From the sequence record OR413575.1: a DNA stretch of 64,000 nt, one strand, 5' to 3'. Shown one piece after another: positions 6,717 to 57,759 of the stretch (position 1 is its first letter; each line of letters starts with the position of its first letter). The position numbers and the translations under genes were made by a program. A model generated the notes under the pieces. The model saw only the letters and a program-made list of their open reading frames with translations. It did no database searches and was not told the origin of the DNA.

Positions 6717-6737
6717 GTATATATTACTTAAGTGAAG
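6717..6737 (+). promoter_or_regulatory. Early promoter
   Basis: GTATATATTACTTAAGTGAAG, consensus copy. Confidence 0.8.
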
Positions 6738-20655: not shown

Positions 20656-20704
20656 CAGAGAGGGGCACTGGCCCCTCTCTTATGCTCTTTCTAACTTTAC
20701 AATG

Positions 20705-38651: not shown

Positions 38652-38657
38652 CAGCAT

Positions 38658-38687
38658 AGCCCCCGGACCCGTTAAGGTCCGGGGGCT
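38658..38687. terminator. Bidirectional terminator
   Basis: AGCCCCCGGACC-CGTTAA-GGTCCGGGGGCT; TATGCTGTC tail on the minus strand. Confidence 0.8.
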
Positions 38688-38708
38688 TAGCCAGGGGTAT
38701 CTTATCCC

Positions 38709-38774
38709 TTATTTTTTTTTTGACTGAAGGCCGATGGTATCTAGAAGGTGATCAAGATATGAGGTATCCGCCAA
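38709..38774 (-). CDS. Candidate 21-aa peptide (TTG start) behind a structured leader
   Basis: AAGGAG 7 nt upstream of TTG; MADTSYLDHLLDTIGLQSKKK. Confidence 0.35.
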   Translation of the reverse strand: MADTSYLDHLLDTIGLQSKKK

Positions 38775-38934
38775 GTCAAAACTCCTTTTCGCGTACCGTG
38801 TGACAAACGGTGTATGCTAGGAGCTGTCGAGCAGCGCCGCGCTCTTTGAATCCCGGATCAAGTTAATCGGAATACGCAGCGCTGTTCGTACATAAGTATA
38901 GTAATGTTACCTAATTTTTTACGCGTTTTCATTC

Positions 38935-39094
38935 TGACAAAAAAAAAAGGAGTGGGCGCGACCCCACTCCTGCGTCTGAGGAAACAATGTCCATGGTAGA
39001 CAGTTAACCGGACTGTGTCCATATTGGTGAATGTTACACCGGTGATAGATTTGCGCTCTTTAACACTTAAGGTGCGACACGCTCAGTTAACATA
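38935..39094 (-). ncRNA. Candidate ~155-nt late small RNA
   Basis: TAGTATG late motif ending at 39091, internal hairpins, terminator GGAGTGGG/CCCACTCC plus T-run; no SD-led ORF. Confidence 0.4.
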
Positions 39095-39120
39095 CTAAGT
39101 GTATAAAAACGTTACGCAAC

Positions 39121-55035: not shown

Positions 55036-55872
55036 TTATCTCGATTGACCTGCAATCAGGCCCCTGAGGAAAGTAGAATGGGCTGCTTTGTCATTCATCC
55101 TGTTAACTGCCTGAATCTCATCCCTTAAGAAATCCGTGTAATTATCGTAAGCATCGGAATATCCTTCGATAATACCTTCAATCTTCGACAACTCAGCGCC
55201 GCCGTATAAATACCCAGAATCCAGATCAATAACGGTATTGTTATAGATCCACGCTTTGGCAGCGAACACCGCCAGTTGCGCTAATTGGAATACAGCGGGA
55301 CCATTAAACGAACTCAGTTCATCATCCTGACCTAAACGACAGGTTAGGGAACCCTGTTGGATTTTACCCATGTAGTCGTTGATTACAACCGTGTTCTCAG
55401 CAATAAGTTCTACGGAAGCTGATCCGTTAATCGGAGCGGGACTTGCTGCACGCAATACTTGCTGTGCCTGCTGCATTAAAGGACTGTTACCACAGTTTTG
55501 AATATTACCAGCCGACATCTGCCAACCGTTGTTCAAATCTGCTGCAACTGTATTGTACCAGTAGTTAAAAGCAATTACTTGTGAGATACGTCTGCCCTTA
55601 GTCTTGGACTTAGGGATCCGCATAACGGTACGATAATCTTGGTTTTCCAAGAATTGTATCTCAGCGCCAGATAAAGGAATATTGACTGTCTCAGCACCGA
55701 GGATGTCTAAGTCCTCAACAATCTGATCGGTGATTACGTGTTTACGAATCTCCCAATCAAGCCCTCCCGCGTATTTGTGGTTTCGGCCCATTCGCTTCAA
55801 GAAGGCCACTTCTAATACTGGCTTAGGTATAGCTCTCTTGATTTCATGGACGAGTTTATCTACAACAGACAT
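55036..55872 (-). CDS. Conserved phiKZ-like protein (probable virion component)
   Basis: EIKRAIPKPVLEVAF N-terminus; divergent from tubulin, as recalled for phiKZ-like phages. Confidence 0.65.
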   Translation of the reverse strand: MSVVDKLVHEIKRAIPKPVLEVAFLKRMGRNHKYAGGLDWEIRKHVITDQIVEDLDILGAETVNIPLSGAEIQFLENQDYRTVMRIPKSKTKGRRISQVIAFNYWYNTVAADLNNGWQMSAGNIQNCGNSPLMQQAQQVLRAASPAPINGSASVELIAENTVVINDYMGKIQQGSLTCRLGQDDELSSFNGPAVFQLAQLAVFAAKAWIYNNTVIDLDSGYLYGGAELSKIEGIIEGYSDAYDNYTDFLRDEIQAVNRMNDKAAHSTFLRGLIAGQSR

Positions 55873-55977
55873 ATACCCTCCAGCATGATGTAGTGTGTAA
55901 GAATATTTTTTGAGGCACTACCTGCTTGTTATGTACGAGTAGTGTTACATACGTTTACACCATATAAGAGGTTTATA

Positions 55978-56913
55978 ATGGAAACTAAGAATAAGGTTCG
56001 TATTTATGGCTGCGGCGGTTCCGGTACTAATATCCTGAACCTTCTGATGAAGCAGGATACCAGCAACCTTGCTGCGTTTGATCCTGTATTCGTCGACAGC
56101 TCCGATTCCAACATTGCCGCTGGTTCCAATGTGTACCGTATTAACGGCATGAACGGTGCAGGTAAAGATCGTGAAGTCATGATGGGCCCTGCACGCCGTG
56201 AAGCAACTAACATCCTGGTTCAGCACGAACCATCGGAAGTTAACATTCTCATCTCTTCTGGCGGCGGTGCTACCGGCGCTGTAGTCGCGACTACTCTGGC
56301 CGAAGAAATCTGGGCTCAGGGCAAACGCGTCATCTTCTTCGTTGTGGGTTCTAATGAATCCCTGAAGACTGCGGAGAACACCTCTAAACATCTGCGTACG
56401 CTGAACGGCGTCGCTCGCCAGCATGGTCACGTCTCTGTTGTCTTCTACGACAACAACGGCGACAATACCCGTCGTACTGAGGTTGATCGTTCTATGGTTC
56501 AAGGTCTGCTCGCATTCCTGGATCTGTACAGCGGCAACCACGATGAGCTGGACACCAAAGATGTTGAGAACTGGTTGTTCCTGGAAAAATCAGCTCAGCT
56601 GGAACCACAACTGGTGCTGATGGATATCGACACTTCTCGCGAAAATGCACTGGAGCGTCAGTATCCGATCTCTGTGGCAATCATCCACAGTAAAGCCGAT
56701 GCCGGTAAAGGGACTATCCCTGCCGACTATACTACCGAAGGTTATCGCCGCGACAATAACGACACCTCGCTCTTCTTCTCCATCCATACGGAAGGTCTGA
56801 ACAACATCATGACGGAACTTACCGACGTGATCGGCGGGTTCAAGAAAAGAGCAGTAGCGCGTCAAGCGACAGCTAACCAGGTATTCGGCGGTGGAACTGG
56901 CTGGGATTTATAA
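55978..56913 (+). CDS. phuZ: Phage tubulin PhuZ/TubZ
   Basis: GCGGSGTNI, GAGKDR and SSGGGATGA tubulin/FtsZ GTPase motifs; short C-terminal tail; start ATG 55978. Confidence 0.93.
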   Translation: METKNKVRIYGCGGSGTNILNLLMKQDTSNLAAFDPVFVDSSDSNIAAGSNVYRINGMNGAGKDREVMMGPARREATNILVQHEPSEVNILISSGGGATGAVVATTLAEEIWAQGKRVIFFVVGSNESLKTAENTSKHLRTLNGVARQHGHVSVVFYDNNGDNTRRTEVDRSMVQGLLAFLDLYSGNHDELDTKDVENWLFLEKSAQLEPQLVLMDIDTSRENALERQYPISVAIIHSKADAGKGTIPADYTTEGYRRDNNDTSLFFSIHTEGLNNIMTELTDVIGGFKKRAVARQATANQVFGGGTGWDL

Positions 56914-57011
56914 TGCCTAGCTTTCCATTTGCTCTGGGCAAGAAAGCAATTGCGCGGTTAAACCCTAAGACACTGGCGATCTTACGCCGCCGTTTTAAGG
57001 CGAAACGATAA
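56913..57011 (+). CDS. Candidate 32-aa basic peptide coupled to phuZ
   Basis: TAATG stop/start overlap; MPSFPFALGKKAIARLNPKTLAILRRRFKAKR. Confidence 0.4.
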   Translation: MPSFPFALGKKAIARLNPKTLAILRRRFKAKR

Positions 57012-57273
57012 AAGCTCTTTATATATGAGCGAATATCACCGCCATTGTTGCTAGCTCACTACAATCTGAAACCTAAATCACTCTCTTAAGTGAGAGTTAA
57101 TGGAACACTGGTTTAAATGTACCAGAGGACGAAAAGCCTCTGTGGGAAAGGCAGCGATGATCGCAGCAGAAGAACCACAAGCGAATGGTAGTCTAGCTTA
57201 GCAAGAAAGGGTTGCTCCCTGATCAGCAAGCGTACCCCGGCCCCGGACTCCGTGGGCTGGGCATTATGCTGTC
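56914..57273 (+). ncRNA. Candidate large structured RNA downstream of phuZ
   Basis: Many nested stems, long-range pairs AACCCT/AGGGTT and GCTAG..ACTAC/GTAGTCTAGC, and a terminal hairpin with TTATGCTGTC tail. Confidence 0.5.
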
Positions 57274-57300
57274 ACATCCTCAGAAGTAAAAATATTACGA

Positions 57301-57320
57301 GTATATATTATCCTAGTGAA
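57301..57320 (+). promoter_or_regulatory. Early promoter
   Basis: GTATATATTATCCTAGTGAA preceded by AATATTACGA. Confidence 0.65.
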
Positions 57321-57336
57321 TCGATTAGGAGTGTAT

Positions 57337-57759
57337 ATGAAAGATGATTATGATTATATCATTAATCGACCAAGTTGGTTGAAGTTAGTTATACAGAAGT
57401 CGGAACGTGCAGGCTGTAAGATAGCTGATGTAGAAGACTTCTTAATAGATTTCCTCACGAACTTAGACATTACGTTAATGTCAGATGCGGAGTTTGGTGC
57501 TTACGACGATTATGAGAAGGATTCGTTCCTGGATTCGTTCTTTGATCAGATGTTAGAGAACTATGCTCAAGGATCGGGAAAGACCGTAGACGAAATAGAG
57601 AACTACGAAGCGTTCCTGTTAGATGTATTATGGTCAGGATGTCTGAGACGAATTATAAAGGACTTTGATAATCGTCTGAGTAATGATGAAGGATATGCGA
57701 TTGAGCGTCTTAGGATCCATTCTAAGAAGGTTATAGTGCAATATATCAAGATGTCCTGA
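57337..57759 (+). CDS. Acidic small protein, array member 1
   Basis: N-terminal YII strand, acidic helices, C-terminal IERLRIHSKKVIVQY. Confidence 0.7.
   Translation: MKDDYDYIINRPSWLKLVIQKSERAGCKIADVEDFLIDFLTNLDITLMSDAEFGAYDDYEKDSFLDSFFDQMLENYAQGSGKTVDEIENYEAFLLDVLWSGCLRRIIKDFDNRLSNDEGYAIERLRIHSKKVIVQYIKMS

Follow-up and report, generated by a model that had tools for sequence, protein, structure and literature searches.

A conserved structured RNA element and an adjoining microprotein gene downstream of the tubulin gene phuZ in Salmonella phage SPLA10 and related jumbo phages

The cell biology and therapeutic use of nucleus-forming jumbo phages attract intense study, but what is known of their RNA biology comes almost entirely from Pseudomonas phages. 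In phiKZ and 201phi2-1, ONT-cappable-seq and Grad-seq revealed candidate noncoding RNAs (ncRNAs) of short to medium length (PMC10914365, PMC11512511). Some are positionally conserved among related phages, and most are pieces of 5' untranslated regions (UTRs) of less than 250 nucleotides (nt) that arise by premature termination upstream of a gene. Here we describe an RNA element of about 240 nt that follows a gene instead. It occupies positions 57027 to approximately 57270 on the plus strand of a 64,000-nt stretch of sequence record OR413575.1 (hereafter, the window), 3' of the region encoding the phage tubulin PhuZ, and it holds no conserved open reading frame (ORF). Bases 55900–57400 of the window belong to Salmonella phage SPLA10, a Salmonella jumbo phage with a 210-kb genome. 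Like the phiKZ and 201phi2-1 RNAs, the SPLA10 element would be a noncoding transcript of a nucleus-forming jumbo phage that is bounded by a start site for a phage polymerase, predicted in our case, and by a terminator. It differs from them in following its gene, in the length (160–330 nt) and the three or more covarying helices of its family, and in its occurrence in enterobacterial phages. A search of the literature returned the ncRNA candidates of phiKZ and 201phi2-1, none of them 3' of phuZ, and no description of this RNA. The phiKZ ncRNA listed at 'p40' (PMC10914365) was considered as a counterpart and rejected, as p40 is the tag of another locus. In phiKZ, 54 nt separate phuZ from the next gene, and no ncRNA has been reported there.

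Two other kinds of system invite comparison. Bacterial small RNAs derived from 3' UTRs have a promoter of their own and use the terminator of the mRNA; they are usually shorter than 120 nt, depend on a chaperone and act through a short seed. The SPLA10 RNA resembles this class in that its start would lie where the upstream ORF ends or beyond, in that it would share its 3' end with the message (a terminator scan found no terminator-like site on the plus strand between phuZ and position 57236) and in that it would occur as a UTR as well as in free form. Unlike members of the class it is longer and multi-branched, and its transcription would fall to a phage polymerase. In lambdoid antitermination, an arginine-rich peptide is paired with an RNA hairpin. 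The SPLA10 locus follows the same logic, with a small arginine-rich gene upstream of a hairpin with a conserved loop and then a terminator, but the likeness goes no further than logic: there is no similarity in sequence or loop type, the polymerase would be the phage's own, and four lineages that keep the RNA lack the arginine-rich ORF.

Conservation and covariation downstream of phuZ

The gene phuZ (55978–56913, plus strand) encodes a 311-residue tubulin in the OR413575.1 annotation, and its protein cluster carries the Pfam domain TubZ_C_2. At the DNA level, bases 55900–57400 of the window have no relative besides SPLA10 itself among 50,697 phage records. PhuZ relatives are present in 179 phage records, the nearest being that of Serratia phage PCH45 (55% identity), followed by those of Moabite-like Serratia phages (42%), of FBKp24-type and KpLz-2_45-type Klebsiella phages (40–41%) and of Erwinia phage PhiEaH1 (40%). 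A protein search yielded PhuZ clusters with 99%, 70% and 50–58% identity to SPLA10. In IMG/VR, a single PhuZ query returned no loci and a PhuZ alignment returned four, with four more in a metagenome collection. The loci compared below are contigs of the PhuZ clusters together with PCH45, PhiEaH1, Moabite, Totoro and three metagenome loci. We refer to them by locus number where needed: PhuZ is 99% identical to that of SPLA10 in the L005 group, 70% in L015 and 55–58% in L019 and L037, and L002 is PCH45.

All of the relatives fetched have a long stretch without a large gene 3' of phuZ, closed by a strong hairpin, and the same order recurs at PhuZ identities of 40–70%: phuZ, one or more small ORFs, a TATG motif, a noncoding stretch, a hairpin and a TATATTA promoter. 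A homologous RNA of 160–330 nt is found at this place in SPLA10-like, PCH45-like, PhiEaH1 and Moabite-like lineages. This long form is carried by phages of the SPLA10 type (Salmonella and E. coli assemblies and metagenomes) and the PCH45 type, by L018, L027 and PhiEaH1, and by Moabite-like phages. Measured from the proposed transcription start (+1) to the end of the terminator, it spans 164 nt in L018, 216–275 nt in the PCH45 type, L015, L027 and the SPLA10 type, 286 nt in PhiEaH1 and about 330 nt in the Moabite type. It is absent 3' of phuZ in pEa_SNUABM_54 and Eowyn. In the Klebsiella phages FBKp24 (L029, 2470–2560) and KpLz-2_45 (L030, 2470–2560), TATG stands right after the phuZ stop codon and is followed by about 45 nt and a hairpin with a run of T; the FBKp24 piece also contains TTAAGT, the hexamer described below, and the two units may be a short form of the RNA of about 80 nt.

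Four elements are common to the family and occur in a fixed order: a junction, J1, and three hairpins, P2, P3 and P4. J1 (57057–57079) is a conserved unpaired stretch before P2, with 15 consecutive bases shared by SPLA10, L019 and L037 despite PhuZ proteins that are only 55–58% identical; J1-like stretches are also present in L018, the PCH45 type and Moabite. An exact pattern derived from J1 and run against genome contigs (596 Gb) proved too short for a collection of that size: all that it matched was unrelated bacterial sequence, by chance. P2 (57080–57097) is a 6-base-pair (bp) stem that presents the loop TTAAGT (57086–57091). Over the 14 lineages with the long form, this loop is TTAAGT in seven, one base off in six and three bases off in PCH45, and the stem that carries it is 4–6 bp long and of a different sequence in almost every lineage; its closing pair is C-G in SPLA10 and T-A in the L005 group. 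P3 (57123–57142) follows a short A/T-rich joint. Inside the SPLA10 group a G-C pair of P3 alternates with G-U, and in the equivalent hairpins of relatives, whose stems differ, four of five pairs show changes on both sides; between Moabite and Totoro, an A-U pair is replaced by G-C once in P3 and once in the terminator. P4 (57141–57179) is an irregular hairpin with its tip at 57151–57167. Its base helix covaries in the PCH45 type, in which one pair is A-U in four sequences and G-C in three, and in SPLA10 its changes are all compensated; L018 and L027 use the P4 helix as their terminator stem.

These hairpins coincide with part of what had been noticed in the SPLA10 sequence alone. The first-pass annotation listed a series of complementary segments, all of which are present where it placed them, and comparison backs three of them: CTCTC/GAGAG, which forms P2; CAGAGG/CCTCTG, which forms P3; and TGTGG/CCACA with a GCGA/TCGC tip, which forms P4. 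It also recommended a search for covariation in the phuZ-downstream regions of relatives, and such covariation was found, with counts in P2, P3 and P4. In an alignment fitted to a covariance model (13 hits, two of them spurious and counted as noise), 84.8% of the cells of P2 and P3 are paired, against 61.7% in shuffles, and eight of nine pairs have changed on both sides; when the partners were slid by one to three columns as a control, pairing fell to 15–52%. In a MAFFT alignment of seven PCH45-type RNAs, which was not fitted to structure and to which the P2/P3/P4 structure was supplied, pairing is 82.6% versus 73.1%, and the covariation score is 0.378 versus 0.185, a value reached by no shuffle. 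Kinship alone can beat shuffles, but the slid controls keep that kinship and are also far lower. MAFFT on its own misaligns the stems across lineages. The covarying helices of the seven PCH45-type RNAs include ten G-U cells, and the T-runs 3' of the terminal hairpin are on the plus strand, on which grounds the RNA is assigned to that strand.

That the SPLA10 RNA belongs to the family is indicated by synteny, by its TATG, by J1 and the P2 loop, and by where P3 and P4 lie. A covariance model (R2) that was trained without SPLA10-type or Moabite-type sequences, and with which 96–180 kb was searched on both strands, gave its best match outside the training set at the expected spot in SPLA10 (57055–57136) and its second-best at the expected place in Moabite. 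At gathering thresholds, Rfam 15 has no match in the window, as the first-pass annotation had surmised; a permissive search of 56700–57500 returned one match at chance level (E = 4.2), and the RNA regions of ten relatives returned none. Existing annotation has mostly missed the element: OR413575.1 is empty from the end of a 32-residue hypothetical protein (56913–57011) to 57337, and in PCH45 and ten Moabite-like records no feature covers the RNA apart from one terminator. The proposal of a conserved, structured, noncoding RNA element without an Rfam match is borne out, and conservation at the level of RNA is, on these comparisons, well supported.

What sets SPLA10-type RNAs apart from other lineages is a shorter P4 and one more hairpin, inserted between P2 and P3. 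The extra hairpin, P2a (57108–57125), overlaps P3 by 3 nt, is missing from the other lineages and is invariant inside the SPLA10 group; in the consensus fold, most of the same stretch (57110–57121) pairs with J1 instead, in a pairing that never varies. The 3' domain (57180–57235) is predicted to form small hairpins and to hold the 3' strand of a proposed closing helix (57185–57192), and its pairs are either invariant or have a best partner that differs between SPLA10 and the L005 group. A long helix that closes the 5' part onto the 3' part, CCATT/AATGG included, is predicted in the consensus fold and never varies; the minimum-free-energy fold of L015 likewise closes 5' to 3'. A pseudoknot had been suggested in which CCATT/AATGG crosses a GCTAG/CTAGC stem. 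The former pairing belongs to this unvarying long helix and finds no backing in relatives, and the latter keeps only three of its five pairs in the L005 group, which leaves the pseudoknot without support.

The P4 tip stands apart from the remainder. Between SPLA10 and the L005 group, 15 of 38 positions differ in this region (57146–57183; 39%), the highest divergence of the locus, and each of the two versions makes a stem of seven pairs with one mismatch. As this divergence is three times that of the fourfold degenerate (4-fold) sites of phuZ (12.7%), the tip may either have been exchanged or be under diversifying pressure.

Boundaries of the RNA and the microprotein gene

The stretch first singled out, 56914–57273, had been taken for a single RNA of about 350 nt. 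Its first 100 nt or so are instead a microprotein gene. A micro-ORF (56913–57011, plus strand) encodes the 32 arginine-rich residues annotated as a hypothetical protein, and its ATG overlaps the phuZ stop codon (TAATG). In its C-terminal half the residues are kept in the L005 group, with five silent changes and one conservative change; the differences by codon position, 7/2/8 overall, indicate moderate constraint. L015 has a 41-residue ORF at the same site with the same C-terminal motif, and all PCH45-type loci have an arginine-rich ORF of 29–34 residues with a related motif; these homologues (29–41 residues) end 15–35 nt 5' of the TATG. In total, ORFs sharing the motif occur at nine further loci; frame and residues are kept across relatives, and substitutions favour silent sites. 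The micro-ORF is absent from L018, L027, PhiEaH1 and Moabite, all four of which keep the RNA, and PHROGs has no family for it. Judged from this sequence comparison, 56913–57011 is a conserved small protein gene and not RNA structure. The complementary segments GCTTTC/GAAAGC and TTGC/GCAA, read earlier as RNA stems, both lie inside it, and the L005 group does not keep the GCTTTC/GAAAGC pairing intact.

A conserved TATG is the most likely starting point of the noncoding part. In SPLA10 this word (57024–57027) forms the end of a promoter-like motif (57015–57027, plus strand), with G57027 as the proposed +1; in PCH45 the corresponding position is 179005 of the record (L002, 4471). Each of the 14 lineages that carry the long RNA has a TATG in the equivalent position, next to the end of the micro-ORF or, where that is missing, next to the phuZ stop; it is preceded by T/A-rich sequence and followed mostly by TA or AG, and positions 57012–57026 do not differ at all between SPLA10 and the L005 group. 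Late promoters of phiKZ, which are read by its non-virion RNA polymerase (nvRNAP), carry a TATG that is necessary but not sufficient and whose G is the +1 (PMC4666361), and the word at 57024–57027 fits this motif. A second promoter-like TATG (55930–55933, plus strand) lies about 45 nt 5' of the phuZ start codon. At a similar distance, the motif is TATG-TA in the SPLA10 type, L015, L018, L019 and L027 and TGTG-TA in the PCH45 and Moabite types; neither was seen 5' of phuZ in PhiEaH1. Conservation of the TATG, its resemblance to the motif upstream of phuZ and its match to the phiKZ promoter argue that the non-virion polymerase would start an RNA at G57027, and they suggest that the phiKZ start-site rule extends to distant enterobacterial relatives. 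Given that no terminator intervenes between phuZ and G57027, transcripts of phuZ would be expected to end in the same sequence.

At its 3' end the element closes with a GC-rich, terminator-like hairpin of 12 pairs (57236–57261, plus strand). A hairpin stands here in all of the relatives, followed by at least five T except in the SPLA10 type and PhiEaH1; in PhiEaH1 the stretch 3' of the hairpin is T-rich but interrupted. Within the SPLA10 group two pairs have changed on both sides, and three show one-sided changes involving G-U. The hairpin earlier assigned to a terminator here is real and has compensatory changes. In SPLA10, the GC-rich hairpin of an intrinsic terminator is present, the U-tract is not, and the terminator scan makes no call. 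Strong hairpins without a T-run occur at both 20656–20700 and 57254–57273 of the window, and a near-identical short word containing TATG follows each; the combination could be a variant terminator for phage polymerases, or a restart site.

Beyond the hairpin, a motif that contains TATATTA (57302–57320, plus strand; TATATTA at 57304) lies 20–30 nt 3' of the terminator in all relatives. The same motif stands before other genes of the window, at 6720, 20709, 37329 and 42772, and we therefore regard it as an early-type promoter of the next operon. At two of the window's TATATTA sites the downstream bases resemble the SPLA10 P2 hairpin, a likeness that is not common to other lineages and was judged a coincidence.

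Proposed role and competing explanations

In the scheme that we propose, the arginine-rich microprotein would be translated by coupling to phuZ, and the RNA of about 240 nt would be made in two ways, as the 3' end of the phuZ/micro-ORF message and by separate initiation of the non-virion RNA polymerase at the TATG. It would end at the 57236–57261 hairpin, which would shield the next operon, driven by its early promoter, from read-through. The six-base loop of P2, the loop of P3 and the internal loop of P4 would be conserved single strands offered on changeable stems, and conserved loops and junctions on stems that are free to vary suggest that the RNA is recognised by a protein or another RNA. 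It would act in trans, by binding protein, in middle or late infection; a terminator or a block to exonucleases would not need conserved loops and junctions. The arginine-rich microprotein is an obvious candidate for the partner, and four lineages that carry the RNA are without it. We put the chance that the locus holds a new phage ncRNA family of this kind, with its own start besides its place in the phuZ 3' UTR, a trans-acting and protein-binding role and a coupled microprotein gene, at about even.

Several observations weigh against this proposal. The discrete RNA species from 57027 and the protein partner or target are both steps that we infer, from motifs and from conserved loops, and TATG is a short and common word. 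A position-weight scan for promoter context was uninformative, the SPLA10 site itself scoring only 11.7. Most of the helices predicted for SPLA10 never vary. Against its closest relatives the RNA diverges by 14%, compared with 12.7% at phuZ 4-fold sites, and outside the P4 tip the divergence from the L005 group is 7.6–10%, near neutral; constraint is visible only in the deeper comparisons. The R2 match to SPLA10 is weak (15.6 bits, E about 1–2), and neither R2 nor a second covariance model, R1, matched the L005 group, the SPLA10 RNA being found weakly. Folding energy is of little help. The region had been described as densely structured, and 56914–57273 as a whole does fold better than dinucleotide-shuffled sequences (z = −3.27, with none of 100 shuffles as good), but this is largely owed to the 3' hairpin: without it, the RNA body (57027–57232) has z = −1.2, not beyond shuffles. 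The two strands of 57027–57275 score alike (−2.82 for plus, −2.86 for minus), and the bodies of 13 family members give values between +0.8 and −2.6, whichever strand is folded. After removal of the hairpin and the comparison of strands, thermodynamic stability was dropped as evidence of either structure or strand.

The strongest alternative is that the structured stretch serves purely in cis as the 3' UTR of the phuZ message, with hairpins that stop 3' exonucleases, end transcription and shield the early operon. No terminator separates phuZ from the stretch, which begins right at the phuZ stop in L018, L027, PhiEaH1 and Moabite; the terminator stem is the P4 helix itself in two of these, L018 and L027; and an early promoter comes next in every lineage. 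Dispensability of phuZ in PCH45, reported in a transposon study that is silent on the region after phuZ (bioRxiv 10.64898/2025.12.19.695335), would make a fine-tuning role plausible. Ordinary terminators elsewhere in the genome are, however, single hairpins of 30–40 nt, and a stabiliser or terminator has no need of a near-invariant loop, conserved junctions or a TATG at its 5' edge in 14 lineages. We consider a role confined to cis possible but somewhat unlikely.

A leader with a conditional terminator is a more doubtful alternative. Polymerases that start at the TATG or come in from phuZ would here either stop at the hairpin or continue into the next operon. A factor that binds the hairpins would decide between these outcomes; it might be the arginine-rich microprotein, whose gene is the immediate upstream neighbour in the SPLA10 and PCH45 types. 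Many terminators of phiKZ sit just 3' of a start site, with a short RNA or a read-through transcript as the outcome (PMC10914365), and the SPLA10-type hairpin, with no T-run, may be leaky. In all lineages, however, the downstream operon has an early promoter of its own between terminator and gene, and four lineages retain the RNA without the micro-ORF. Informal inspection of the sequences did not show the terminator arm to have an alternative partner that recurs across lineages: an antiterminator helix between the 5' strand of P4 and that arm can form in only some of them, and was rejected as a candidate.

A bolder version of the trans-acting scheme would join the RNA and the arginine-rich microprotein in a dedicated ribonucleoprotein of nucleus-forming phages, located at the boundary between units read by the nvRNAP and by the virion polymerase, where it would control termination or transcript handling, with the P2 loop as the peptide site. 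We mention it as speculation to which we attach little confidence.

The remaining explanations fare worse. Spacer DNA that happens to contain a promoter-like word and a terminator, with chance complementarity and with conservation left over from recent ancestry, would account for the ordinary folding energies of the body and their similarity on the two strands, for a divergence from the closest relatives near the neutral rate, and for the many SPLA10-group helices that never vary. It is disfavoured, and we judge it improbable: the motifs and hairpins persist at PhuZ identities of 40–58%, where flanking noncoding DNA can no longer be aligned, and the covariation exceeds both shuffled and slid controls.

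An element acting as DNA (a replication origin, a packaging site or a centromere-like site for the tubulin) is suggested by position, since the element adjoins phuZ. In related TubZ systems, centromere sites adjoin the tubulin gene. We found no tandem or meaningful direct repeats and no iterons in 56900–57340, however, and compensatory changes through G-U on one strand fit RNA and not duplex DNA, which makes a DNA site very improbable. Antitoxin RNAs of type III toxin-antitoxin systems are tandem repeats of a short unit, and a repeat-array antitoxin RNA of that type was rejected on the same absence of tandem repeats.

The least probable explanation, and one that we would hardly entertain, is a tmRNA-like or protein-coding region in which the ORF at 57100–57201 is translated or serves as a tag. 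This ORF exists, as had been noted, its length is kept in the L005 group, and the SPLA10 RNA is tmRNA-like in size and in having a short ORF that ends in alanine-rich residues; but there is no tRNA-like domain, ARAGORN finds no gene in the window, Rfam gives no tmRNA match up to E = 10, PHROGs has no family for the ORF, and nothing equivalent to the tag frame exists in L015, the PCH45 type, PhiEaH1, Moabite or any other lineage. While the second half of the ORF varies freely, its first 13 codons are identical down to the nucleotide, a pattern that suggests nucleotide-level constraint.

For annotation, the consequence is a correction beside the well-known gene phuZ, namely a microprotein gene followed by an ncRNA. 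An RNA with covarying helices in at least four enterobacterial nucleus-forming lineages, together with its microprotein, is a cheap and concrete target for transcript mapping and structure probing.

Surroundings of the locus

The next annotated gene (57337–57759, plus strand) encodes a hypothetical protein of 140 residues without a significant PHROGs family. The gap that precedes it had been called unusually long for so gene-dense a genome. It is long, but the window has another such gap, an unannotated 469 nt at 38652–39120, and a crude ORF map shows several of 400–770 nt, some of which hold small annotated genes. The 38652–39120 gap lies between convergent genes and folds with z = −5.56 relative to shuffles; it has a hairpin followed by T10 at its start, A10 and a hairpin near 38945–38985, and a TATG at 38758–38761 in a context similar to that of 57024–57027. 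It may hold a second noncoding transcript.

Upstream of phuZ, the locus appears to have a mosaic history. Over 55036–55977, the DUF7484 gene differs between SPLA10 and the L005 group at 39.8% of 4-fold sites, compared with 12.7% for phuZ, and the 105-nt spacer between the two genes contains a single difference. This contrast, together with the near-identical spacer, indicates a junction near the divergent promoters. The G+C fraction of phuZ (56000–56900) is 0.51–0.53, versus 0.36–0.45 in the flanking genes.

In PCH45 (L002, 3940–4455) and likewise in L016, L017, L019, L020 and L022, two extra small genes stand between phuZ and the micro-ORF. The frame of the first is open over most of the second in all five lineages, and the two may be either an overlapping gene pair or a frame that is held open for another reason.

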